A DNA stretch of 64,000 bases. Origin: Podarcis cretensis. Lineage: Eukaryota. Under the pieces are notes generated by a model. The model saw only the letters and a program-made list of their open reading frames with translations. It had not been told where the DNA came from and made no database searches. Below, piece after piece: positions 2,499 through 64,000 of this stretch (the first letter of the stretch is position 1; the number at the start of each line of letters is the position of its first letter). The translations under genes and the position numbers were made by a program. The stretch lies in NCBI GenBank assembly GCA_951804945.1, contig OX638162.1:24676001-24740000 (forward strand). The letters are read 5' to 3'.

Positions 2499-2689
2499 TA
2501 CATATAGAGGGCACAGTGTTCTTGATGGAAGATACTGGTATTCCCCATTGCATTTCCAAAGGCCCAACAGCAGTGCACCAGGGAATGCTAGTTTCTGGGC
2601 AGGGAAGGTGCGAGTGAGCGAGAGTGCTATTGCCCTGTTTGTCAGCTTCCGGAAAGCCAATTAGGATGAATGAAACATAACCAATTTGT

Positions 2690-3080
2690 TTTATTTTATT
2701 TATTTCTAAGATTTCTTACCCACCCTTCACCATAAGGTCACAGGGTAGGTTACAACAATATAATATACAATTAGAAGAACAAGTAACTCATAAAACAAGC
2801 AAAACCATTCCAGATGGAACAAGATAGTTTGAATTTAACAAAAGAGGCAGGTCCCCACAAAACAAGATACCTTAACTTCTAGAGGTCAGGGTGAAGAGGT
2901 GCCTATTCAGCATATGGGGAAAGCTGTGCAGTGAAGATGCTAGACAGGCCCATCTTTGTAGAGAAGGAGTTCCACCACTTAGGGGCTGCCACAAAGAATG
3001 CCTTCTTCTGGGCTGCCATCCACCGCACTTCTGAGGGTGGCAGAATCACTAAGAGAGCCCCCCCTTCTAATCTTACAAGG
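2690..3080 (-). mobile_element. Old L2 LINE 3' fragment
   Basis: tttattt tail; gagttccaccacttaggggctgccacaaagaatgcc is the reverse of the L2 'AFSVAAP.LWNSL' region. Confidence 0.55.
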
Positions 3081-3796
3081 TTGGTAGGGATTTTATTCCA
3101 TAATTGTTGAATTATTATGAGAAATATTTCTTTGCTTCACTCAGATTTAATTCCATTTGGGACTTTTGATTTTTGCAGTGTAGATGGTGGAGGTTGTAGC
3201 CAAAGTAGGTCTAGGCTAGCTTCCTGTCACCACAAGGGTTTCCTATGTAGGTAAGTTTTTAATGGTTTATGTTTTGTTGTTTTGTTGTTTCTGTATATGC
3301 TGGAAACTGCCCAGAGTGACTGGGGTACTACCCCCCCCCCCATCATCATCATCATTATAGAATTGGGCCGAATCTGGCTGAGGTGAATTCCATAATGATT
3401 TCTAAACAGGTTGGGTGTAGTAAGATGTTGTAAGTGGATCAGTAAAACCAATAAAAGTCCTAAGAGAGTTTTTGGGAGAAGGGTCTCTTTCTTCTACCTG
3501 ATCTCTGATGAATTGGTAGATCATTCCTTTCTTTCCATTTCAGACAATCCTTAATCTTCCTGGAGGTCTTAAGAGCAGTGTCATAGACTACATCATAAAT
3601 GCTTCTAAGTTTACTGAGCATGATTTCAGCAAACATTGCTTCATTGATGCCATGCATGAGCTGGCAGTGCTTCAGAAGAGTACTTGGAGATAGGGGTTTG
3701 GACTCCTTCATGCTTTGCTTTGGCAGAGGTCAGCAACACACACACACTTTCATAAACAGTAACCCTAAAATTATTCAAAAAAAATAAATTAAAAAA

Positions 3797-3865
3797 TTCC
3801 TTCCAGTAGCACCTTAAAGACCAACTAAGTTAGTTCTTGGTATGAGCTTTCGTGTGCATGCACAC
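3797..3865 (-). mobile_element. Penelope-like element terminal fragment (partial hammerhead-like motif)
   Basis: Reverse strand reads gtgtgcatgcacacGAAAgctcataccaagaactaacttagttggtctttaaggtgctactgg; same family as 62551-62960. Confidence 0.7.
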
Positions 3866-4619
3866 AAGGAGGGTGGACAGCCTAGCTGGTAAGGGGTGTG
3901 GCCTACAGAGAAACCTGAGGGCCATATAGAATGCTCCAGAAGGCCACATTCAACTGCTAGTCCTGAGGTTCTCCAGCACTTCAGTTGTGGATTGACATAT
4001 AAATCTCTCCTGTATTATAGATTTCTATTGCAGTAATAATTTTCATAAAGCAGCCATTATTGGTACCAGATATGTTACCATGAAGCTTATACTTCCAGCA
4101 GTGGGCTTAAATCAGTTACGTTTTATATACAAGACTTGAAATAGATCCATGCAGTGCTTTGCCATGTATATAAGACAGTTAATTTGCAAAGCACTCTGTA
4201 ATAAAAATATTATCTATTTTATGGCTTTTCACATAAGAAATGAGTCTAATCTTAATCATAATGAATGCTGAATTACTCTGGCCATACCTAGATGATGCAA
4301 AGCACTTAGAAAGGTAGCTTTTTAGTGGAACAACTAAAGGTCATACAAGTAATAATAACATTTAACACTTACTGTATATAGCACGTGTTGAGTGTTCAGA
4401 ATGCTCCACATTCATTCGTCACACCAATAATACATAAATATATATACCATTAGCATTAGTGTCTGGTCTCCTGAATCTTTCAGATACCCTCAACATAAAG
4501 CTTGCATCATACTACAGTAGGAAATCACAGTAGAACGAGGTGGCATTGTGTGCATGCCTGTGTGTCATAGTGTTGGGGCTGTTGCTTGGTGTGACCTGGC
4601 CTGGCTGGGTTGAATAGCC

Positions 4620-4668
4620 ATGGGAAATGGCCACACAGTGCAGCCTAATGAAGCCCTCATCGTGTCAG
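4620..4668 (+). CDS. FLOT2: First coding exon of a flotillin-2-like gene (MGNGHTVQPNEALIVS-G); paralog, alternative exon or relic
   Basis: Matches the vertebrate FLOT2 N-terminus MGNCHTVGPNEALVVSG at 14/17 residues. Kozak gccATGG; 49-nt exon ending in phase 1 at CAG|GTAAGG, as I recall FLOT2 exon 1. Orthology is uncertain and downstream exons were not seen. Confidence 0.75.
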
Positions 4669-5312
4669 GTAAGGAACCCGGGGGTGGGGCGTGGGTGAGC
4701 AGGGGCATGATTTCCTCAAGTGGGGGCATCTGTGGGGAAGGAATGCTCACTGAACTCCCTCTTTCCCCTTTCACATGTCTGCACCTACCCCCCCCCCCGT
4801 GGCTCCTCTTCTGCCTTGCAGGGTTGCATCACCCTCTTCTTCTCCTTCCCTACTTCCTCCTGTTCTCCACCTTCTTTCTCCTTCCATCTCTGCTTTTTAT
4901 GTGAGGGAAGGTCTTCCTTCCTGAACTGGGCAAGCCCTGGGAGGGGGGCTTTATGTCTTCCATTCCCACCCCTCTTTTGGTGGTTGGGTGGATGTGCTAG
5001 ATGCATGCAGAAGACACACACACCTCAGCATCTCCTCATTGGGCTTGGAATGTCCTTTGCCTGAAACCCTGGACAGCCACTGCCAGTCAGTGTGAACAAT
5101 AGTGAGTTAGGGCCTCTTACCAGCTCTTAGCGCCCTTAGCAAACCACAGCTCCTAAATTTGTTTGAGAGAAGCCATCACTGTCTAAAAACTGTATCATGA
5201 AATGTATTGTGTGAATGGGGACATTGTAAGGAGATTCCTGTTCCCCTCACAGAGCTACAGTGCACAGGGTGAGCCTAAGGAAGAAAAACTGATTGTTAAA
5301 CTACTCTGTGAA

Positions 5313-6935
5313 CTTCCGGGTTGGCGCCATCGCCGAATGGCGGACTCCCTCCGAGCTCCGGAGGGAGCCTGCTCGGCAGGGGCTGGGTTCTACTGCGCCG
5401 GCGACGCGGGGACCCTCAAAAACCATGGGCGCTGAAACCCATGGGCATGGTGACTCGGCGGGCACCGTTTGCGCCCCCCCGACCCGCGAAGGAGCCTTTT
5501 TAAAGGCTGCGGAGCGGGTGACGGGGGGGGGGTGCTGTGAGTCCTCCGCTTCCCCTGCCGAGTGAAGCTGCATGCCATTCGACGGAGAGCGCTGACTTCT
5601 TCCATTGAAAATTTGGTCTTTAAAAGAATAACCGGTGAGTAATTGGAACTTGGATTAAAAAAGGGGGAAAATTCTATTTAAATTCGGAGCGAGCGGGGGA
5701 GGTGCAAAAAGGAAGTCAGCCTCCCCCCTGTTGTAGAGGAGCTAAAGCAAAGGATTTGACAACTAAGATCGAGTGTAACCTTTTTTTGATAAAGTTATTA
5801 ACTTCGCGATGGAAAATTATAAGACTGGGCTGGAGGAGAAAAGTGGAATGTGAATTAAAATGCAACCCCCCCCCCCCGGAAACCCCGGGAGCGATCTGAA
5901 AGAGCGCCGGGAGAGGAGAAATAGAGGTTTTGACAGCTGTCAAAGGAGCTGTCAAAGCGGAAGAACAAAAAGAGAACTTTGTTACGAGGACTTTGCTGGT
6001 CACATTTGTTACAAATTGGATATAAATTGTTTAAAACAAGGAATAATAAGTTACTTTGACTGTTGGGTGTGATCGGGAAGGAAACTGAGTTACTATAATC
6101 CCTCTAGAGGAGCTGTGGGACACTACAAGTATTGTTGGCATAGAATTTGAATAGGACTTTTTATCGCCTGGGAAACTGCAGAAATGGAACACTATTTTGT
6201 CTACAGAGGTCTACACACTAAAGGAGACAATAGATTTATCTATTGAAGAATGGAAGGGACTTGACGTAATGTTTTGTTCCTGAATAACAAAGCCTCTGCA
6301 GAGGAATTAGAAGCTTTTTGGAATTAGAACATTTGTGCAGGAGAGCAGGGGGGGGGAAGAGGAGGAGAGAGAACAACAAGAACAACAAGAATAACAAGAA
6401 CTGGACAAAGTTGGAAGATAGACTCCTTCCAAGATTGGACATTCGAAACCAAAGATGACCAAAAGATGGCAAAGACTAATAAAAAGACGGCAAAGCGGAC
6501 TGGTGAAGGACTGTGGTTTAGATGTGGGAGCTCCAGGATGACAGTAGACATTGATGGACATTGGGAACGCAACCGGGAAAGGGGGGAGGGAAATTTGGAA
6601 TCCAAAGGGTGTTAAATTACATTTTATTCTTTTTTTTATCTTTCTGTTTATCTTAATCTGTACTGCATATTAAAGACGGGAACTCGTGGAAGGGAACAGG
6701 TTGATTTTAGGGGATGGGAAAATATTTTTTTTAAATTGGGCCAATGATAATAATTTTAAAATTTGGGGTAAGAATTTGTTGAATCTATTTGAAAGAATTG
6801 GAATACAAGAGGGGGATGGGAGGGGAAGTCCTGGAAAGATGCCAGTGAAAATAAGGTTTTAAATTTGGATGTTTTTCTTTTTCTGTTATATTTGAAAATC
6901 TTTAATAAATATTATTAAAAAAGAGAGAAAAAAAA
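5313..6935 (+). mobile_element. Non-autonomous L1-type retroelement with CpG-rich 5' end and A-rich tail
   Basis: Starts cttccggg..cgccat..atggcgg (ETS/YY1-like motifs); CpG-rich first ~300 bp; no long ORF; GGGGAAGTC 3'UTR motif shared with the L1 at 11560; AATAAA at 6904 then A tail; interrupts a hairpin-type repeat (~5120-7040). Confidence 0.65.
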
Positions 6936-7139
6936 GAATTGTAGCTCTGGAAGGAGAATAGCACCCCACAGCTCCCATAATTCTTCACAATGAGCCATGA
7001 CTTTCTAATGTACCACGGCAGCACTTAAAATGTATGGTGCAAATATGACTCCAGTCTTATAGACCCTTCGTCATGCCATTGATGACTCCAACCCTAGATG
7101 TCGCTGTTCAAGACTATTGCAATGTGACTATTTATAGCA

Positions 7140-7180
<41 letters not shown>

Positions 7181-7959
7181 TGAAGTTTCAAACTAACATG
7201 ACTACTGAGAAAAATATTGGGAAAGGGGATGTATGTGTACATCACCCCCCTGCCCCATTTTGGGTTCTTTCTCTCTGTTTCAATCTAGCTTCAACAAGGG
7301 TGTTTATAGAACACAGCATAATGGAGCATTGTTTGGCTCGGGATTTAATTTCCCTCCATCACAAGCTGCCACGGCAGCCCCTGTCATCACGATTGGTCAC
7401 ACTTTTTGTGCGCGCTATATCTCGCCGAAAGTCACAGCCCCTCCTGGGTTGCATAATCTCCCTCGTCTGGAGCGGAGCTCCCTTGACATTATAAGAAGCG
7501 GAGAGGGGGGAAGTCAGGGGCCACCATTGTCAGCAGAAGCCTCTCTGTCCTCAGGCTTCCCCCATGCCCCCTTCACTCCGTAGATTCACACACACTGAGC
7601 AAAGCAAACTTAAGAGCCAAAGCACATGCAGTGCTGTGTTCCTGCGTTTTCTATATTTTTGAGTCTAGAGGCAACCCCATTGGTTGATGGGAGGTGTAAT
7701 CCAATCCTCTCCAATGGTGGGCCACCAACTGGAGCACTGCTGAGGGATGCCACTCAGTCTCACCAGGGAGCCAAAAACCCTCTGAAAGGATTTCATAAGG
7801 AAGTGAGGGGGAAATAAGAGAAAGGCCAGTTTGGATTAAAGGAAAGAGCTGACCCTAATCTTGACCCAACCCTATACTAAATTGATGGGCTTTTTTGGAG
7901 TGGGGGGTGAGATAACCCTCCATGAGTGGCCATTGAAGCTCAGTAGGCAAATCCCCTCC

Positions 7960-8340
7960 TCCTCCCATTGCCCCCCCCATCTGTCAAAACTGACAGCTGG
8001 TAAAATAAGACAATTTTATTTTTAACCATTGTGTGATAAATCATTTCTCCCGCTAATGCTTCATAAGTGAGGAGCAGGTTGTCGGAGAGTTAAGGTTTCC
8101 ACACAAATTCTCACACCCACAGGGAAGGGCGTTTATTTGATCTACACACCAAAAAGTAAAGGTAGCGGTAAAAGCTTCTGCAGGGTTTTTTTCCTGGAGA
8201 TGAACTGAAAGCAAAATTTCACCCCCCACAGAGGGAGGATTCGGCTTGTCTGTGTTCACCACATGAGTCATCGCTTGGATGATATGACTAGAATCTGGGT
8301 GGCTGTGCACCAATCAATTCCCAGCATGCCATTTTCCAAG
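7960..8340. promoter_or_regulatory. Candidate enhancer/CNE (Meis dyad plus Pbx-Hox site)
   Basis: CTGTCA 7981-7986, TGACAG 7991-7996, ATAAATCA (TGATTTAT reversed) 8036-8043; repeat-free. Confidence 0.4.
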
Positions 8341-8589
8341 CCTGCAGTTGGTGGTTAGAGCAGCCTCCCCACCAACCTGATGCCCTCCAAGTGTGCTGGG
8401 TGAAAACTTCCATCAGCCTCAGCCAGCCTGGCACCACTGAGTCCAAACTGGCTGTGAAGGCTGCAGTTGATGGGAATTGTAGCCCATACTGGCTCTGCTA
8501 GCTGCAGTTGGTAGGAGTTGGAGTTACAAATGGCCATGTTGGCTGGGGTTGATTGGGGTTGTAGTCCAAACTTGCTGTGCTGTATGGCG

Positions 8590-9122: not shown

Positions 9123-9167
<45 letters not shown>

Positions 9168-9575
9168 TATTTCTACCCTACCCAACTGTCCGGGTTTCCC
9201 CAGCCACTCTGGGTGGCTTTCAACAGAACATTAAAAACAGAATAAAACTTCAAACATTAAAAACTTCCCTAAACAGGGCTGCCTTCAGATGTCTTCTAAA
9301 AGTCAAATAGTTGTTTATTTCCTTGACATCTGATGGGAGGGTGTTCCACAGGGTGGGCGCCACTACTGAGAAGGCCCTCTGCCTGGTTCCCTGTAACCTC
9401 ACTTCTTGCAGTGAGGGAACCACCAGAAGGCCCTCAGTGCTGAACGTTAGTGTCTGGGCAGAACAATGGGGTGGGGGGGGGAGATGTTCCTTCAGGTATA
9501 CTGGGCCGAGGCTGTTTAGGGCTTTAAAGGTCAGCACCAAAACTTTGAATTGTGCTTGGAAACATAGTGGAAGCT
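9123..9575 (-). mobile_element. L2 LINE 3' fragment with (TTA)n tail
   Basis: ORF 9250-9540(-) VLTFKALNSLGPVYLKE...RAFSVVAPTLWNTLP is an L2 ORF2 C-terminus. Confidence 0.9.
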
Positions 9576-11559: not shown

Positions 11560-13246
11560 TTTATGATAATTTTTTATTAAGGTTTCAACAAATTTTATAA
11601 TAACACAAAAAGCAAAACATCACAACAACAATACAAACAAACAATACAAAACAGAAATCAAACAAAATTAAAAGGTTCAATTTTTGGTTTCATACAGCTT
11701 TCTTTCCGGACTTCCTCACATCTCCCTTTTCTGTTTTCAAATTTCCAATTTAATTTTAGCAGATTATTCCCCTATTTTAACCATATTAATATGTCTTAAT
11801 TTCTTTTAAAGTTAACCATTCCTGCTGCTATCCACTCATCTTTTTCTCTTCCCTCCTTAGGTTAACTAAACTGTGGTTCTCTTATTTGTTACTAATGAAA
11901 CATCTTTGCATATTCCTTCAGCTTTATCACTAATGCCACATTGTCTCAATATCCTGCATCATATTAACATTCATATAATTTACAATGTTTTTGCAGATAA
12001 TCTTTAAATTTCTTCCATTCTTCTTCTATTTGTTCTTCTCCCGTATCTCGGATTCTGCCAGTCATTTCTGCTAAGTCCATATAGTCCATCAATTGCATCT
12101 GCCATTCTTCCAGAGTGGGCATATCTTGTGTCTTCCAATACTTTGCGATGAGTATTCTTGCTGCTGTTGTTGCGTACATAAAAAAGGTTCTATCCTTCTT
12201 GAACACCTTCTGATCAACAATGCCCAAAAGGAAGGCCTCTCGTTTCTTCAAGAAGGTATACCTAAATACCTTTTTCAACTCATTATAGATCATTTCCCAG
12301 AATGCCTTTACCCTTGGGCATGTCCACCAGAGGTGAAAGAATGTTCCCTCAGTTTCCTTACACTTCCAACATTTATTATCGGGCAAATGGTATATCTTTG
12401 CAAGCTTGACTGGTGTCATGTACCACCTATAGATCATTTTCATAATATTTTCTTTCAAGGCATTACATGCCGTAAATTTCATACCAGTGGTCCATAACCG
12501 TTCCCAGTCAGCAAACATAATATTATAACCAATGTCTTGTGCCCACTTAATCATAGCTGATTTAACCATTTCATCCTGAGTGTTCCATTTTAACAGCAAG
12601 TTATACATTCTTGACAATGTCTTAGTTTTAGGTTCTAACAATTCCGTTTCTAGTTTTGATTTTTCCACCTGGAAACCTAGTTTCTTGTCCATGTTAAAAG
12701 CCTCTCTAATTTGGTAATAATGTAGCCAGTCTCGCACTCTATCTTTTAGCTTCTCGAAGCTCTGCAATTTCCATGTGTTTCCTTCCTGTTCTAATATCTC
12801 CCAATATTTCGGCCATTTGGCCTCCATATTGAGCTTTTTCAGAGCCTTAGCCTCCATAGGTGACAACCACCTTGGGGTCTTATTTTCTAGCAAGTCTTTA
12901 TATCTTATCCAGACATTAAAAACTGCTCTCCTGACAATATGGTTCTTAAATACTTTATGAACTCTTACCTTGTCGTACCACAAGTATGCATGCCATCCAA
13001 ACGCATTATTAAACCCTTCCAAGTCTAGAATGTCAGTGTTTTCAAGAAGTAGCCAGTCCTTAATCCAGGAGAAAGCTGCTGATTCATAATAAAGCTTCAT
13101 GTCTGGCAGGGCAAACCCCCCTCTTTCTTTAGCATCGGTTAATATTTTAAATTTTATTCTGGGCTTTTTGCCCTGCCAGACAAATTTAGAAATATCTCGC
13201 TGCCACCTCTTGAAACAATCCATTCTGTCCACAATCTGCAAAGTCT
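11560..13246 (-). mobile_element. 5'-truncated L1-clade LINE with open ORF2 C-terminal part
   Basis: ORF 11964-13277(-): GGFALPD motif and CWKC...HLWWTC zinc knuckle; AATAAA and polyA; TSD catctctgtgtttctttttt (11540-11559 / 13247-13266) at a TTTT/AA site. Confidence 0.95.
11964..13246 (-). CDS. L1-clade ORF2 remnant (post-RT region plus CCHC zinc knuckle)
   Basis: About 428 stop-free codons; the first ~11 aa of the listed 437-aa ORF come from flanking DNA beyond the truncation. Confidence 0.85.
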
Positions 13247-13884
13247 CATCTCTGTGTTTCTTTTTAACAGCTTGCACCAGTCAGTCCCCAGAACTTCTGC
13301 CCCTGCTCTTCTTCCCAGAACCCCGTGCCAAATACAGCTTCCCCTTCTGCTGACATCATCATCCACTGTAACCCTGGCAACCTCCTCCAATGTGCCCAGC
13401 AGAGTCTTCTGCCTTGTTGATGGCTTCCATTGATGGGTTAAGGACTGGCTATTTCAACCTTTGTTTCTTAATGCATTCAGAATCCCCTTTCATAAGTTTA
13501 GGGTTGGAGTAGGCTTGTTTGCATCCCCTATATCCCCCCATTCATGTTGGCATTCTTTGTTCAGACATGATGCCCAGGCAGGACTCTTATGAATGTGGCT
13601 TGCCAATACATTATGTTATATTGTTATATTTCTAGAATTGATATGTGTTTTTCTCGGGTGTATGTTAGCACATATGCTATTGTTTTGCTATATTATGGAA
13701 TTGTTGCAATGTCATTGTCCTGCTATGTTATTACGAAATTGTTTTCATAGTGTTTATTTGAAATGCACTCCTCTTTCTTTGCTGTAAGCCACCTTGAGCA
13801 TGATTTTTGTGTGCAGAAAAGCAGCATACGAGTAAAATGAATGAATGAATGAATTTAGCCTCCCAGGGCTAACAGTTTGTGGAA

Positions 13885-19027: not shown

Positions 19028-19391
19028 GGGACGCAGGTGGCGCTGTGGGTTAAAGCCTCAGCGCCTAGGACTTGCCGATCGAAAGGTCGGCGGTTCGAAT
19101 CCCTGTGGCGGGGTGCGCTCCCGCTGCTCGGTCCCAGCGCCTGCCAACCTAGCAGTTCGAAAGCACCTCCGGGTGCAAGTAGATAAATAGGGACCGCTTA
19201 CCAGCGGGAAGGTAAACGGCGTTTCCGTGTGCGGCTCTGGCTCGCCAGAGCAGCGATGTCACGCTGGCCACGTGACCCGGAAGTGTCTCCGGACAGCGCT
19301 GGCCCCTGGCCTCTTAAGTGAGATGGGCGCACAACCCCAGAGTCTGTCAAGACTGGCCCGTACGGGCAGGGGTACCTTTACCTTTACCTTT
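19028..19391 (+). mobile_element. Young Sauria (Squam1) SINE
   Basis: Full length, CpGs retained, (ACCTTT)n tail, perfect 14-bp TSD taggtatctcagca. Confidence 0.97.

Positions 19392-25394: not shown

Positions 25395-25439
<45 letters not shown>
25091..25439 (+). mobile_element. L2 LINE 3' fragment with (TTA)n tail
   Basis: Near-match to 9123-9575 in the opposite orientation (EGLLAVPSLREVRLQGTR). Confidence 0.9.
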
Positions 25440-25440
<1 letters not shown>

Positions 25441-26627: not shown

Positions 26628-26767
26628 NNNNNNNNNNNNNNNNNNNNNNNNNNNNNNNNNNNNNNNNNNNNNNNNNNNNNNNNNNNNNNNNNNNNNNNNN
26701 NNNNNNNNNNNNNNNNNNNNNNNNNNNNNNNNNNNNNNNNNNNNNNNNNNNNNNNNNNNNNNNNNNN
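26628..26767. other. Assembly gap (140 N) between GA-rich ends
   Basis: Run of N. Confidence 1.
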
Positions 26768-35039: not shown

Positions 35040-36010
35040 CACTTCCACAAGAGACAGAGATGGCTTCCAACTTGGATAGTTTTAAAAGAGGGGTGGATAA
35101 ATTCATGGAGAATAAGGTTATCCATGGTTGCTAGCCATGATGGGTATGTTCTGCCTGCGTGGTGCATGATCCCCAAGACAGTGATGCTCCTGGGTGTCAG
35201 CTCCTGGAAGCCACAGTTGGGAGACTGCTCTTGTGCTTGGGTCCAGCTTGCCAATTTACCATGGGCATGTGGGTGGCCACTGTGAGAACAGGAGACTCAA
35301 TGATCCCCAAAAATTCAAGAGAGATATTCTTGTATGCAAATGTAGCGGCTCGAATACGAGTTGCCAAGGGATGGAAAGATCAGGAGGCTCCAAAAATAAC
35401 AGACTGGCAAATTAAATTACAGGAATTTGTGGAGATGGCTCAATTGACTAGCAAACTCAGAGGTAACTCAAAGCAAAAATTTGAAGAAAAATGGGATGGT
35501 TATAAAAGATATGTTCAAATATACAATAATAGTTTTGACTCCGTGCTAGCGTTCGAATGACAAAGGAAGTAAAAGGAGGTGGAAAACAATTAAGGATTTA
35601 TTATGTTTTCTGAATGTATTGGAAAATCTATATAGAAAGGTTTATTGTTTTGTGTACATTCAATTGTAAGATAAAATATATGCGAAGGGACTTGACAGGA
35701 AGTCAAAATTGAAGAAACGATTTTGTAAAATTTTCATTATTATCGCTATTTTTTATTTTTATTTTTTGTGTTTGTGTGGGTGTATGTTTTGTATGGAATG
35801 TTTGGGAGGAAATAAGATGGTAAATAACATAACAAACAAAATATTGATGTATGTAATTTTTAAATTATATTTTGTGGGTAGTATGGTTGTAATGTTTTTT
35901 GTAACATAAAATCATTCAATAAAAATTATTTTATTTTTTTTAAAAAAGAGAGAACAGGGGACTCAGTGGACCACTGGGCTGATCCAGCAGGCTGTTTGCA
36001 TCTTCTTATG
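35040..36010 (+). mobile_element. CR1 3' fragment interrupted by an L1 3' fragment
   Basis: ttttaaaagaggggtggataaattcatgg...ggccactgtgagaacagg, resuming at 35950. Confidence 0.75.
35303..35949 (+). mobile_element. 5'-truncated L1-clade LINE
   Basis: FLYANVAARIRVAKGWK...DWQIKL is homologous to the 11964 ORF C-terminus; AATAAA and A tail; 19-bp TSD gagaacagg(a/g)gactca(a/g)tg. Confidence 0.85.

Positions 36011-47136: not shown

Positions 47137-47184
<48 letters not shown>
47025..47184 (+). mobile_element. L2 3' tail with (TAA)n
   Basis: cccagagtggatggggaaacccagccagatgggtggggta(ata)n. Confidence 0.8.
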
Positions 47185-47185
<1 letters not shown>

Positions 47186-48029
47186 TAAATAATTGTTAAA
47201 TACCCTCCCTCCCCTTGCCAGTTTGCCTGGTTCAGCACAATGGTACCTGCATCTATCTTGATGGGTGCTTTATTGGAATGGTGAGGAGTCCGAAGAGCAC
47301 TTTTTAGATGAGGGATGCAGTTGATAGAAGAGGGTCAACTGCCCTCCCCATATTTCTGGTATGTCGCTGGAAAGGACAGGATGCAGAACCAAGGTGTGGC
47401 TTCTAATTGGCTGCAGGAGCTTCCTGCACTTAAGCAGAAGCTGTGTTGGACGTTCGGCTTCTGAAAAATATATTCAAAAACACTTACTTCTGGGTTTTCG
47501 GTGTTCGGGGGCTGATTTGTTCTTTAACTAAGCCATTCAAGAACCAAGGTTCCACTGTAGTGGCACCCTGCTATATGGAGTTTAGTAGTTGGGCTGTCTT
47601 CTTTAGCAAGAGTAGCCAACATGGTGCCCACCAGATGTAGTTGGACCCCAGGTTACTCCAGTTTTCATGACCAGGTAGGCCTCCACTGAATGGTATGGTA
47701 ACTGAGATCCACAAATGGCACCTGGTTAGTTTTGCCATGCCTTGATGAATATTGGCTTGTAGTAACATGGAGATGGGCTTTTTCACTGGTGGCGCCAATG
47801 CTGTGGAATGTTCTCCCTGCTGAAATATGAGAGGCTTCACTGAGATAGGTATGCCACTGGTTCTTAAAGGCACACCTGTTTAGACCAGCATTTCCCTGTT
47901 CTCCTAACTTGAATCCCCTGCCTTGATTGTTGTTTTAACTTTTATGCTGTTTAAATGGGCTTGTAAATAAACCATATATTTAATTATGGATGTTTTAATG
48001 TGCTATGTATTTTAATTATGAGTAGTTGT

Positions 48030-50878: not shown

Positions 50879-51728
50879 TGCGTGGACAGGCGGAGTCCCC
50901 AGATCCCGAGTGGTCCCCCCCGTCATGTGGAATAACGACTCTAGACAACGTGCTATGGGATTAAATTGGCCACAACTTTATTAAATTTCAAATGTGGGTA
51001 GACCTTGGCTCAGGCATTGGGCGTTCTCCCTCCCTAGTCCCCAGCCGGGGACCTAGGGAGCATCAGGGTTATCCAGTGTGTGTGTGGGGGATGGGCCGGC
51101 TCTGGAGAACATATGTTCAAGCAGAGATAGCCGCCCCCGTTACGCCGCCGCAGGGGAGAGCAATGACGACCTTTCGGCGTACGGCCAAAGCCTCCCTTCA
51201 AAAACCCCTTTAACGGGGAACCCTGGTATCGCCGCCGCAAAGAGGAAGATGGACTAAAGGATTCCGCCCAAGGCCTGATACCGCCAAAGTTGTGACGTTT
51301 TGCTACGGGAAAGGCGAAACCTGCCAATGCAGGGAAATTCCTTTCCGGCCCTTTAACAGCGACCTTATCGTAGCCGCGCCCGCATACCTGTGGAGAGGTT
51401 AACCTGCAAAACCTATGAAGAAAAGTTAACCTGCAAAAGAAGACATTAACTGAGGGTGGGTAGGGTGGGAGAAGCTCTGGAGCCAAGTGAGGATTAACAA
51501 GTAAGATCCACCCTCTATTGTGTGGGCAGGTAATCCCTCCCCTTACCTGGCCTGGTTTCCCTGGCAACGCTTCCCCCAGGTGGGACTGGACAACTCACTG
51601 GGGTAGGCGGGGACCTCCAGGTATCCCACCTGAGGGAAGGCAAAGCCTATGCTGATGGGGCCACTCCAGATCCAGGGCTGCACGCGTCCACGCAAAAGGC
51701 GCCCCCCGTTTTAAGTGGGGAGCGGTCA
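50879..51728 (-). mobile_element. CpG-rich solo LTR, probably Gypsy-type
   Basis: TG...CA termini, 4-bp TSD ttat / ttac (1 mismatch), minus-strand aataaagttgtggcc near the left end, CpGs retained. Confidence 0.6.
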
Positions 51729-55976: not shown

Positions 55977-56407
55977 CGAGACCACATAACACTGGTCTTG
56001 AAAGACCTACATTGGCTCCCAGTTTGTTTCTGAGCATAATTCAAAGTGTTGGTGCTGACCTTTAAAGCCCTAAATGGCTTCGGTCCAGTATACCTGAAGG
56101 AGCGTCTCCACCCCCATTGTTCTGCCTGGACACTGAGGTCCAGCGCCGAGGGCCTTCAGGCCCTCACTGCAGGAAGCCAAATTACAGGGAACCAGGCAGA
56201 GGGCCTTCTCGGTAGTCGCACCTGCCATGTGGAACGCCCTCCCACCAGATGTCAAAGAGAACAACTACCAGACTTTTAGAAGACATCTGAAGGCAGCCCA
56301 GTTTAGGGAAGCTTTTAATGTTTGATGCATTACTGTATTTTAATATTTTATTGGAAGCTGCCCAGAGTGGCTGGGGAAGCCCAGCCAGATGGGCAGGGTA
56401 TAAACAA

Positions 56408-56450
<43 letters not shown>
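55977..56450 (+). mobile_element. L2 LINE 3' fragment with (TTA)n tail
   Basis: LVLTFKALNGFGPVYLKERLHPH... Confidence 0.9.
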
Positions 56451-56451
<1 letters not shown>

Positions 56452-58419
56452 TACACCATGCCAAATTCACCACTGCTTTTTGTATTTCCTCTCTTTCTAA
56501 AGGAGGGGGTGGAATGCCCACTGGTCTGCCTCACCTCATCTCAGGAAGAAACATGATCCAACAGGTGAACGGCAAATGGCCTTAAAATGGTATCTTTAAA
56601 CTCAAAAGTACCCATCAGCACCCCCCACACACACAATGTTGGGAAGCTGAAAACTGCAGAAAATTTGAAGGTAAGAGCATAGAAGTTGGAAACTTTTTTC
56701 AGGCTTAGAGCCACATTGTGTCATGGGTAACTTTCCAGAACAGCATTCTAGTGGTAGATGGAGCCAGAGGAAGAAATGGAGAAAGCAATGGATGTGATAC
56801 TTTCTGTAGGCTACATTCCTGGCATTGAAAGTTTTCTACAACACACTTCTGTATTCAGCCAGGCAAAGGTTCATCACAGCTCAAGGATGTAGTCTCGCCA
56901 GACAAAAATGATGAGAGAAGAGCAGTGAGGGACATGGACGGGGCACAGGGGGCCAGATAGAGGCTGCTGGGGGCCACATTTATTCCCTGGCTTGTTATTT
57001 TCCCCACAGCTGGCAGAAGCTGTGGAAAGGGCTCCAAAAGGGATTTGGCAAATGCAATGGATTTCCGAGTACATTAGGAATCTGTGCATTTGTGTTCTGA
57101 AATGAATTAGGATTGGAGAGAGGGCACTTTTTCTATAACTGCAGGTCAAAATAAAACACACACACAGATACCCTGTTCTCTCATCTGCTTGCGGTAATTA
57201 CAAACAGAAAGTCCTTTTTGCCAGCTGCAAGGTTCATGGAGAAGTGGAAGGAAGATGTATTACTTTCTAACTCCTGAATCTGTTGGTTTTTTGTTTTTTA
57301 AGAAAGGGGAGTGAGCCAAATCTTCTGTTTCAGCTTCCTGATAGGGTATATTTCATATACCTGGCAAAGTCATGATTCCATTTTGGTGGTATATCTATAG
57401 CATCAGTATCGAAAGTCGGATGCAAATACATGTGTTCTCAGGCCAGGTTCAAGTTTTGTGTATTAACTGACAAGGCTCTTAACAACTTATGTCCAAGTGT
57501 TGGAGTGTTGGAATAGGATCTGGGAAACCAGGGTTCAAATCCTTACTCAGCCTGTGAATCTCACTGAGTGGACCTGGGCCCAGTCTCTGTCTCTCAGCCT
57601 GAACTACCTCACAGAGTTGTTGTGGGGATAAAATGGGGAGGACAGCACCATGTAAAACACCTTAGGCTTCTTGGAGGAAAAGGTGGTATATAAATGTAAG
57701 AAATTAAATAAATATGATAAGCATTTTTAATACACACTTTCCTCATGTGTGCATTTTTGTGCAGATTATTTCGTACAAATTTGCAAAATTCAGAGTAGTG
57801 CAAAATTGTTCCCTGTGTTTCCTTGGAGAGTATGAATTATGTAGGTTCACATTAAAATCCAAAACAAATTTCTTCCTTGTCCCTAATCTGGGTGAGTTTT
57901 GGGCGCAATTGAGAGAGAAGTCAAGAAACTCAAATCTCCTCCATCCTTTGTCCATCTACTCATAACTCCCATAAACATGACTGTGGCTTGGAAGAGGGCC
58001 ATTTTTCAAATTGCACAACTGTACCAAAAAACCAGTCAGCCTCAGGTAACACTGACTCTGTTTTAAAGTGCACCTTTATAACTTTCCTGCTGCTGAATGC
58101 AAAAGCCTATTATGCAAGCTACTCTCTTGATTTCTGACTGCCTGTTTACACATAACAGAAGGGGGCAAGCTGAGAGCAGGTCTGTTTTCTGCACCTATTA
58201 TTCAGTTGCATTGTTGAAGTTCAGTGCTAAGCTGCCTTTTCAAATATCTATCTATCATCTATCATCTTTCTATCTATCATCTATCTATCACACAGCAAAA
58301 TGTCCTATGATTCTAGAACATTATAGCAGAATTGTTTTCTGCTCAAAGAGAGAGAGAAAAAACGGAAGAGGCTGAGATGTGGGGTGGAGGAAGATGAAGA
58401 AACAGCTTGGGACTTAATA

Positions 58420-59369: not shown

Positions 59370-60716
59370 TTTATGGAGAAATCTGTTTTATGGGTGGTTT
59401 TAAAACAAGTTTTTAAATAAGCCATCCCAACCTCCTCCCCATCTTCTTCAGCAAGGTATCACCAAACCAGTCACTGGGAAGACTCAATGCACAGTGAATG
59501 AGGACAAGAAAGAAGCTGGTATCATTGTCACTCCTACGCATGGACATCTCTGCCTCTCCTGCCTGTGCTAAGCATAGAACATGCTGTGCTTCTAAAACAA
59601 TGCAAGCGCTGGAAACAGCAAACAGTGATTGAAAGACAGCAGAATGCAGGAGGAGATGAAAGTGTCACCATGAACCATCTTTAGACCAGTAACCCTCTCG
59701 CAAGCCCTAGAATCCATGCATAGCACAGTGTAAATACACTGTGGTGTCTCTTCCCAGGGAAGGTTAATTTTTATAGACGTCAGGACAGCCTTTTCACAGG
59801 GCAGCAAAACTTTCTAATATCATTAAAACCCAACTGAATGGAACGCCTAGCTGCAAAGACGTTAAGGCCAGTTGTGTGACCTTCTCAAATACAAATGGCC
59901 TGGCTGTTTGCCAGCACTTAAAAACACCCCAAACCTGCTAAATCTCTTTCTTAAAACAACTGTAACTCTTCCCTTTCAAGTTTTTCAACCTTTCACCCGC
60001 CAGGTTCCTAGCCCTTCACCCCTGACCCACGGCTGTGTTTGCTTAGTATTGTGCCAATCGAGTTTAGAAAGGTGAAAAAACTTGATGGTGCAAAGGAGGG
60101 AGAAGAATCCAGGAAGCAAACCTATGCAAAATCCCAGCACAACTCTCCCTTTTCAAAGAGGTGCAACTCCGATGGAACTTAAGAGATAATTCAGAACTGT
60201 ACATAAACTGGCTGTTAACTAAACACAAGCGGCATGATCTGGTCCAGTGATATAGTGGACAGGTGCACTTAGGAGAGTTCTTGGATGAGTCAGGTGGAAA
60301 TGCAAGTGGAAATTGCTGGTGTTTGTTTATTTGCCCCATGTTTGAATTGGAAATCAGTCCAGCAAATATGAACAGTATTTGCAGTTGTTGTTTTCAGTTC
60401 ACAAATGATACATAATCAATTGCACACCACCACTCATTTTCATTATATTTCCTTTGCATTGAAATGAATGGGGTGGGAGGGAAATGCACTGCAGTGGAAT
60501 GGGAACACTGCTGCATGTGATGGGAACACGGCAGAGTGGGAAACTATGCTTTATTACATCCCTAGGTGCACTTCGTGAGAACCCATGAAGCCAAGCCCCT
60601 TCCAAGACTATGCAACTTTTGACCAATGCAGCCATTTGGGACGATGGCATCTGCAGAAGTTCTACTGAGGGACAGGGAGCTCAGGGCATTATGTTCCTAT
60701 ATTTCCTTCTCAGCCT

Positions 60717-61078
60717 AGGTAAAGGTAAAGGTACCCCTGCCCGTACGGGCCAGTCTTGACAGACTCTGGGGTTGTGTGCCCATCTCACTTAAGAGGCCAG
60801 GGGCCAGCGCTGTCCGGAGACACTTCCGGGTCACGTGGCCAGCGTGACATCGCTGCTCTGGCGAGCCAGAGTCGCACACGGAAACGCCGTTTACCTTCCC
60901 GCTGGTAAGCGGTCCCTATTTATCTACTTGCACCCGGAGGTGCTTTCGAACTGCTAGGTTGGCAGGCGCTGGGACCGAGCAGCGGGAGCGCACCCCGCCG
61001 CAGGGATTCAAACCGCCGACCTTTCGATCGGCAAGTCCTAGGCGCTGAGGCTTTAACCCACAGCGCCACCTGCGTCCC
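60717..61078 (-). mobile_element. Young Sauria (Squam1) SINE
   Basis: Reverse complement of the 19028 copy with about 4 mismatches by eye. Confidence 0.97.
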
Positions 61079-61275
61079 TAGGAACTGCTTAATTGAACGT
61101 CTCAGTCTAGGAACTGCTTAATTGAAAGAGTGTAGCCCACAGCTCAGTGTTAGAGCATCTGCTTTGCATGCAGAAAGTCTCATGTTTGATCACTACCATC
61201 TCTAGACAGGGCTGGGAAAGTCCCCTGCCTGCAGCCCCTGATAGCGGTTGCCAGTCAGCATAGACCAGCATAGAC

Positions 61276-61650: not shown

Positions 61651-62618
61651 GCATAGACAATACTGAGCTAGATGGACCAGTAGTCTGACTTTCCACAAGC
61701 CAGGAACACAACTGTAGCTCATGGGCTGAAGCAGAGTGGTAGAACATCCTCTTTTTCTTGCAGAAGGTGCCATGTGCTAAAAAGGCTAGCAAACACTCTT
61801 GTCTGAAACTCTGCAGATCCACTGCCAGTGAGAGCAGGACAACAGTGAGCCAGAAGGACAAGCTCTTCTAAGTTGTTGTAATGCCACTTCCTGTGTTCCT
61901 AAGAGTTTATAGAAGACAATAGCCAGAACTTCCAGCATAGGAGCTGTGAATGAATTAGACCCATTGATTCAGGAATAATGCAGCAGGTTATGATTAATTC
62001 TGCTATTTTCCGCAGGACCAAATTTGTACCAGATCATTCTGTCACATGGTACTAATAAATTACCTGAGGGCATTGCATTGTTGTCGGGTTTTGTTTTTGT
62101 TTAGTATTATTTAGCATAATGTTGCATTTTGGTTATTACATTATTTATCATGTTACATGTCATCAGCCCCTCTTTAATTAAGGTGATGGAATCCAGCAGC
62201 ATGGAGGCTCACCCTATCCTTGTACTTATTTGGAAGAAAGATACATCTTTCTCATACACACACACACACACGTTTTAAAATGCAAAGTAAAACACCATGC
62301 TCTTCTGTGCAGTAACCAAGCTGTGTGTACACATGCAAACATGTGTTTCTGTCACAAATTGATTGCAGGGATACCACAAAGGCATTTCTTGCATCACCCA
62401 AAGGGAATGTAGCATGCCCAGTAAATCACTGAAGGGAGAAACAAGTAGAATTTCCTGCTTCACTTGCACTCCCTGCCTCTCAATTGAACCAGATTCAGCT
62501 AGGTAGCTGTGTTGGTCTGACACAGTCAAAATAGATAAAAAAATTAAAACATTGTCCAGTAGCACCTTAGAGACCAACTAAGTTTGTTCTTGGTATAAGC
62601 TTTTGTGTGCATGCACAC

Positions 62619-62655
62619 GTATCTGAAGAAGTGCGCATGCACACAAAAGCTTACA
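62619..62655 (+). ncRNA. Degenerate minimal type I hammerhead-ribozyme-like motif
   Basis: gtat-CTGAAGA-a-gtgcgc-at-gcacac-AAAA(GAAA in the 3797 copy)-gctta; stem I partner disrupted by the MITE. Confidence 0.5.
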
Positions 62656-62915
62656 CAGTGGTACCCCAGGATGCAAATGGGATCCGTTCCGGAGACCTGT
62701 TTGCATCCTGAACAGAGCGTAAGATGCGACAGCGCGTCTGCTCATGCGCGGGTCGTGTTTCGCCGCTTCCACACATGTGCGTGACGTCATTTTGACCGTC
62801 TGCACATGCACAAGCGGCGAAACCCAGAAGTAACACACTCAGTTACTTCCAGGTCACCGCAAAGCGCAACCTGAAAGCGCTCAACCTGAAGCGTATTTAT
62901 CCCGAGGTATGACTT
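62656..62915. mobile_element. Tc1/mariner-type MITE
   Basis: cagtggtaccccagg...cccgaggtatgact; related to the 54246 copy. Confidence 0.8.
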
Positions 62916-63002
62916 TTCCATGAACAAACTTAGTTGGTCTATAAGGTGCTACTGGACAATTTATATATATATATCTCAATAGAACCTTTATGGATGTCAG
63001 GG

Positions 63003-63050
<48 letters not shown>

Positions 63051-64000
63051 GAAAAGGCAGTTGAAGTGAACCACCTCTGAAATTATTTTTAGGGTTAGTT
63101 TAGGCAGGTGCACAGATCACTTAATTTTTCAATGCCCAGCCTCTTAACACAGTTCAAGACCGGGGACTCATTGCCGGGGACCAAGCGCAGCCTTTGAGGC
63201 CCTACTGAGACCACACGCTCTCTTCCCAGACCACACACCTCACTGGTCCTGCTTCTCCCCCTTAGTGTTTTTGCCTGGCTGAACTGTATGTTAGCAATGC
63301 ATGGCAATCACAGATTAAGGAGGGAACTGGGTGGGACAAACCTGTGAATGAAGACATGTGAAGGTGATATAAATTGGGAACAGACTGATTTGTCCATTCC
63401 AACTTCAAGGGCCCCTGTTCAATTTAATTATTAGTCTACCACATTTAAAGACCCTCCGTTCCTCTGACAGAAGCACTGGGTGGCTAATGACAGGAAATCT
63501 AATTAGAATGCATTTCTATCATAGTAAAACCATCAATTGAAATCTATCAATTAGAAGCATAATTCTGTAATACCGTCCCGGTAAAATACCAAATTGAACT
63601 GGATTCAAAAGCCTGTTTTGAGCTGTATTTAAAATTTTCCACTGTGTGTGGGGGCAGTTAGATGTTCACTGGGGGGGGGGGGTCCCACATACAGGGCACC
63701 ACCACCAAGAATGCCCTGTCTTGCATCACCTGGATTCTGGTATGGATAGAATAAGAAGCAAAGCATCCTCCGCTGACTGTGATGTAGTGGTGGGGAATCT
63801 CAAGTTCTGGGGACCATTTATCTGGCTGTTGAGGCTTTCCTTCAGAGCTACATTCTTCACCAGCCCTGCTTTTCACTTTCCTTGAATGTTTTTGCCTGGC
63901 TGTAATGTGTCTTTGAAGTCATGTGGCTTGTGGAGGCAAACTGCCTCTGGCATATCACACTCTGCTTGTGAGATTTGCATTGGCTACCAATCTGCCACCA

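Follow-up and report, generated by a model that had tools for sequence, protein, structure and literature searches.

An isolated exon descended from the first coding exon of flotillin-2 in a repeat-rich region of the lizard Podarcis cretensis

The stretch of Podarcis cretensis DNA analysed here (64,000 nt of contig OX638162.1, assembly GCA_951804945.1, positions 24,676,001 to 24,740,000; hereafter the window, with all coordinates counted from its first letter) contains a short unit resembling the first coding exon of FLOT2, which codes for flotillin-2. From ATG to donor the unit spans 49 bases of the plus strand (4620–4668). It is composed of the ATG (4620–4622), 15 further codons and the initial base of a codon that the boundary splits (phase 1), the G at 4668 being the last base of the unit, and encodes the peptide MGNGHTVQPNEALIVS(G). 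An in-frame TGA (4611–4613) lies 9 nt 5′ of the ATG, which is the first start codon in the open frame and stands in a strong context (gccATGg, with G at −3 and +4). Directly after the exon follows a splice-donor-like GTAAGG (4669–4674; GT at 4669–4670). The full site, CAG/GTAAGG, fits the donor consensus, MAG/GTRAGT, at eight of nine positions. The preliminary description of this DNA, made from the letters alone, had quoted the exon and placed its boundary at 4668/4669; the quotation and the boundary are both correct.

A 20-residue read of the exon frame, searched against all PDB chains, matches only 9bq2_A and 9l3g_a, both of them Flotillin-2 (E 0.009). Residues 1–17 align to residues 1–17 with 14 of 17 identical (pattern MGN.HTV.PNEAL.VSG), the three substitutions being C4>G, G8>Q and V14>I. 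The similarity to FLOT2 stops at the GT donor, after Ser16 and one base; the boundary of human FLOT2 exon 1 presumably falls at the same codon (phase 1 after Ser16). A chance model built on the window's own six-frame residue frequencies predicts 6e-10 matches per window with 13 or more of 16 residues identical to the FLOT2 N-terminus, while the real window has one and the best match in 20 simulated windows reaches 7/16. A chance origin of the peptide is thereby ruled out, and the unit at 4620–4668 descends from the first coding exon of FLOT2, as had been proposed from the letters.

The donor belongs to this inheritance. Sites of the form MAG/GTRAG are few, only eight on the plus strand across the whole 64-kb window, and this one sits exactly at the codon where the FLOT2 similarity ends, so it was inherited and did not arise by chance. 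Because the donor is kept and non-exon sequence comes after it, the unit derives from FLOT2 exon 1, together with its donor, by copying at the DNA level. The same features, along with the lack of an exon-2 motif following the exon, rule out a processed retrocopy, a distinction that the preliminary description had already drawn.

According to PMC3215287, flotillin-2 carries a myristoyl group on Gly2 and palmitoyl groups on Cys4, Cys19 and Cys20, which bears out what the preliminary description had stated for Gly2 and Cys4. In the lizard peptide Gly2, Asn3 and Thr6 are all present, while residue 4 is Gly, so that the Cys4 palmitoylation site is lost. With Gly2 and Thr6 in place, the consensus myristoylation pattern is intact, and the myristoylation signal at Gly2 is predicted to be kept. 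The Cys19 and Cys20 sites of FLOT2 presumably lie in exon 2. Gly8 belongs to the G-P-(N/D)-E turn and is not known to vary among flotillins, whether bacterial or human (FLOT1 and FLOT2); a change from Gly to Gln requires two base changes under the standard genetic code. V14I, a conservative change, is the one substitution that the PDB alignment adds to the retained Gly2, the Cys4>Gly and the Gly8>Gln noted at first reading. Residues 7–16 would supply strand one of the SPFH fold. Relaxed constraint would account for the three amino-acid changes, the loss of Cys4 and Gly8 among them.

The exon lies in a single-copy island of ~1.2 kb (3866–5057; GC 0.45), without another copy inside the window. 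One contig of 2,305 nt, from a related species (organism G, sequencing run X14), lies over the locus, with a depth of ~124 corresponding to single copy. It aligns to 3341–3775, 3861–4934 and 4969–5312 of the window, and over 3861–4934 differs from it by 46 other letters and 10 gaps (~95% identity); the island stretch is single-copy in organism G at a likeness of at least 88%. The presence of this contig at single-copy depth indicates that the local assembly is sound and that the locus predates the split of both species. The observed-to-expected CpG ratio is 0.13 in the island and has a median of 0.21 across the window; the exon itself holds one CpG. Thus, no promoter-type CpG island surrounds the exon, and 3866–5057 stands at the background CpG level.

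Repeats border the island on both sides. Upstream lies a fragment of an extremely high-copy interspersed repeat (3786–3865), marked by loose contig ends at 3786/3791 and 3865; the summed contig depth of the bin 3700–3899 amounts to 1,330,627, compared with the single-copy level of ~124 in organism G. A second copy of this 80-nt fragment is found near the other end of the window (62537–62618, 89% identity). Downstream lies a SINE-like repeat, old, diverged and high-copy, which is best preserved at 5058–5093; 145–160 contigs of run X14 carry loose ends at 5058 and 5093, and the bin 4900–5099 has a summed depth of 74,018. Beyond it extends a high-copy repeat of ~1.6 kb on the plus strand (5313–6935), comprising a CpG-rich 5′ part (~5300–5900) and ending in AATAAA and an A-rich tail (~6905–6935). 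Its left limit is set by the end of the single-copy contig of organism G (5312). Summed depths in the bins from 5300 to 6900 range from 550 to 248,408, three of the eight bins being below 1e3. All three of the probable-RNA runs considered below contribute contigs to this repeat, and its open pieces contain no Pfam family; the family may be transcribed.

The preliminary description had stated that no CpG island surrounds the exon, which holds for the island at 3866–5057, and had overlooked a CpG-rich patch 600 bases downstream of the exon (~5200–5900, observed-to-expected ratio 0.8–0.9). The patch starts where the single-copy contig ends and sits in DNA whose contig depth is 1e3–1e5, compared with ~124 for single copy, and it is therefore repeat sequence and not a promoter island. 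A promoter CpG island at 5200–5900 is ruled out, as the patch falls inside the high-copy repeat that ends in AATAAA and an A-rich tail. Further CpG-rich patches are found at 50900–51400, 60600–61200 and 62400–63200 (ratios 0.77–0.92). Another one, at 19030–19390, appears by eye to be a young copy of a tRNA-headed SINE; ARAGORN makes no tRNA call there.

Elsewhere the window possesses a stop-free frame of 438 aa on the minus strand (11967–13280) without a Pfam match at E ≤0.1. Its tail shares 37% identity over 75 residues (E 1e-19) with a 139-aa frame on the plus strand (35141–35557), and by eye the longer frame resembles what we take to be the C-terminal part of a LINE ORF2. (ATT)n microsatellites occur at five places (7129–7180, 9123–9168, 25395–25440, 47139–47202 and 56405–56453).

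The remaining exons of a flotillin gene were sought by cutting the six frames into stop-free pieces and scanning these against Pfam, with pieces containing X from an N run left aside on both strands. A run of 140 N, unreadable, is located at 26628–26767. On the plus strand all 703 of 703 open pieces of at least 30 aa were scanned, and on the minus strand the longest 450 of 453 pieces of at least 40 aa, the scan thus leaving out three pieces of 40 aa and 237 of 30–39 aa. Neither Band_7 nor Flot appears among the matches listed for these 703 plus-strand and 450 minus-strand pieces; for two plus-strand batches the matches comprise the best 25 of 33 and the best 25 of 30 families, the remainder apparently having E-values above 0.15 and 0.29, respectively. 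Over all families, the lowest E-value is 0.0013 for plus-strand pieces and 0.00018 for minus-strand ones. These values are at noise level for 1,153 queries, and the families concerned look unrelated to any gene here. With pieces of 30–60 residues, Pfam has limited sensitivity for short or decayed exons, and weakly scoring or frame-shifted ones would be missed by it.

The exon-2 motif, as quoted in the preliminary description, has no six-frame site at five or more of eight positions within the window. Consequently the claim that no partner exons are visible stands for the window, at the limited sensitivity of the Pfam scans and the motif search: no exon of the SPFH/Band 7 domain or of the C-terminal flotillin domain is recognised in it, including the 59 kb downstream of the first exon. 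An Rfam scan of the window at gathering scores gave no matches and ARAGORN no tRNAs, and the window looks gene-free. The neighbours of FLOT2 in human are DHRS13, ERAL1 and miR-144/451, and the gene is presumably compact there. No short-chain dehydrogenase or Era family was found in the Pfam scans, the window reaching just 4.6 kb upstream of the exon. PMC3215287 describes human FLOT2 as a single-copy gene of 11 exons, and PMC3445523 places its start codon in the first exon.

Evidence on transcription comes from 24 listed sequencing runs, none of which is recorded as RNA. Twenty of them, from organisms A–G, hold part of 3600–6600, and six hold at least half of its words. Four runs were compared over 2500–8499, namely three probable-RNA runs (X15, X16 and X17) and one DNA run (X14). 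The probable-RNA runs are small (15–110 million letters of contigs), contigs resembling human genes may be silently dropped from them, and their contigs prove presence but not absence. Contig depth in all three is zero in the bins 4500–4699 and 4700–4899, that is, over the exon, with the RNA label itself a guess; it follows that these runs contain no joint leaving 4668. We regard this as a weak negative. Their contigs fall on repeats, apart from a single faint one from organism G (record 21 of X17; 210 nt, depth 2.7) that covers 4286–4495 with four differences from the window and ends 125 nt upstream of the ATG; faint transcription or DNA carry-over may account for it.

The same N-terminus was also looked for in other proteins. 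A read-through frame of 94 aa, compared with a word-indexed protein set whose length filter bars full-length flotillins, gave 38 candidates, none at E ≤1. A 30-aa read-through searched against 1.84 billion representatives (50% clusters, with isoforms hidden inside them) gave one match, P0001, a repeat protein of 1,196 aa that contains a PN.ALVISG-like repeat, which we set aside as an unrelated coincidence. Hence neither the representative search nor the word-index search, both of low power, yielded a flotillin with the N-terminus of the exon. A degenerate pattern of the peptide has no match in metagenome contigs, and a literature search returned no paper containing the 7-residue peptide of the exon or the phrase 'FLOT2 pseudogene'.

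We consider a non-functional DNA-level fragment copy of the FLOT2 5′ end to be the most likely reading of the locus, with roughly an even chance of being the right one. The 5′ end of the gene, that is, its first coding exon, the donor and some flank, would have been copied at the DNA level and either inserted into a gene-poor and repeat-rich region or left there as a remnant, and the fragment would have been drifting there from a time when at least two related lizard species had not yet diverged. The duplication itself would thus have involved the 5′ end of FLOT2, and the exon at 4620–4668 is probably spliced to nothing. The ATG, its start context, the open frame and the near-consensus donor are all intact, which speaks against a relic. 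However, when neutral drift is simulated for a 51-nt unit that must keep its ATG, open frame and GT, 51% of the copies are still intact at 10% divergence and 26% at 20%; a unit this short so often survives neutral drift that its intactness says little about function. Three origins had been put forward in the preliminary description: a paralog or ohnolog with a giant first intron, co-option of the exon by another gene, and the relic of a lost flotillin. The dead relic is favoured among them, but not as the remains of a whole lost flotillin, because similarly preserved SPFH or flotillin exons would then be expected downstream, and the 59 kb searched there yielded no recognisable one. Remains of a whole gene, or partner exons nearby, were set aside after the Pfam scans of both strands of the window found none. 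A partial fragment copy looks like the better fit. An origin as an old ohnolog surviving as a neutral relic is unlikely, since 13 of 16 residues could not have persisted that long without selection.

Several functional or mobile alternatives must be weighed against the fragment copy. The exon could be a working first coding exon, either of FLOT2 itself, used from an alternative far-upstream promoter outside any CpG island, or of an unannotated paralog, in both cases with an intron of more than 59 kb. The intact ATG, start context, open frame and CAG/GTAAGG donor, the retention of Gly2 and Thr6, the single-copy state of a locus that a related species also carries and the faint probable-RNA contig upstream of the ATG are all consistent with it. 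We nevertheless find it doubtful, though worth keeping in mind: the 59 kb searched contain no exon 2, SPFH exon or other flotillin exon, the CpG content is at background, G8Q alters a residue that is not known to vary between bacterial and human flotillins, contigs of the three small probable-RNA runs leave the exon uncovered, and the low-power protein searches found no flotillin beginning in this way. In addition, human FLOT2 is described in PMC3215287 as a single-copy gene of 11 exons. The corollary, that lizards of this group make a second flotillin-2 in which the myristoylation signal is kept, Cys4 is missing and the Gly-Pro turn is changed, we regard as a possibility of the same modest order.

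Co-option is considerably less probable. A myristoylation-signal exon serving a different, non-flotillin gene downstream, inside or beyond the window, would be in keeping with the intact donor and the predicted N-terminal acylation signal, and a foreign partner would suit the missing downstream flotillin exons. But the plus strand offers no convincing protein family to play this part (best E 0.0013 over 703 pieces), neither RNA support in the three small probable-RNA runs nor a promoter signature is seen, and it is not obvious what a non-flotillin protein would gain from the first SPFH strand (residues 7–16). Capture and transport of the fragment by a Pack-type cut-and-paste (hAT) transposon could be imagined from the ~1.2 kb single-copy island with repeats on both of its sides. 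Here the sequence argues against any such element, and we judge this about as improbable as co-option, or marginally more so. The 743 exact 8-bp direct-repeat pairs around the exon have a best adjoining inverted match of 10/16; for the 71 inverted 14-mers (at least 12/14) the longest flanking duplication is 5 bp; and no inverted pair does better than one of 13 nt at 92%, which chance alone would give. Terminal inverted repeats with an 8-bp target-site duplication were accordingly not found around the exon at any better than chance. Moreover, the stretch is single-copy in organism G at a likeness of at least 88%, no second copy exists in the window, and the bounding repeats continue differently in their other copies, looking like SINE fragments and unlike the two ends of one element. 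Transposon capture of the exon is therefore not supported, decayed termini being possible.

If the exon is part of a dead fragment, it represents one more partial gene duplicate and a warning for annotation, as a false 'flotillin-2-like' model may be started on it by gene prediction programs. Should it be spliced, flotillin-2 would have a natural variant that lacks the first palmitoylation site, which would bear on how acylation sets the membrane targeting of flotillins, and the exon would be an unusual example of a first exon duplicated and placed tens of kilobases upstream.

Comparison with known systems places the locus as follows. Like exon 1 of vertebrate FLOT2 (reggie-1), the lizard exon starts at the ATG, agrees at 14 of 17 residues, retains Gly2 and has its GT donor after Ser16 plus one base. 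Unlike it, the lizard exon lacks Cys4, a palmitoylation site according to PMC3215287, and differs at positions 8 (Gly against Gln) and 14 (Val against Ile). The locus as a whole also departs from vertebrate FLOT2, as it lacks a CpG island, any of exons 2–11 within 59 kb and, in three small probable-RNA runs, support from RNA. With a processed FLOT2 retrocopy it shares the condition of an orphan coding piece away from the other exons, but what comes after the lizard exon is a donor and then non-coding sequence, where a retrocopy would have exon 2. Unlike Pack-type hAT transposons, it has neither inverted termini nor an 8-bp duplication and is single-copy in organism G. Gene-fragment pseudogenes, meaning partial unprocessed 5′ duplicates, differ from it in that the lizard fragment is still formally intact and its duplication is presumed. 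They resemble it in the kept exon/intron boundary, the isolation, the background CpG level and the position among repeats, and a gene-fragment pseudo-exon, belonging to this already known class, is our best reading of the find.
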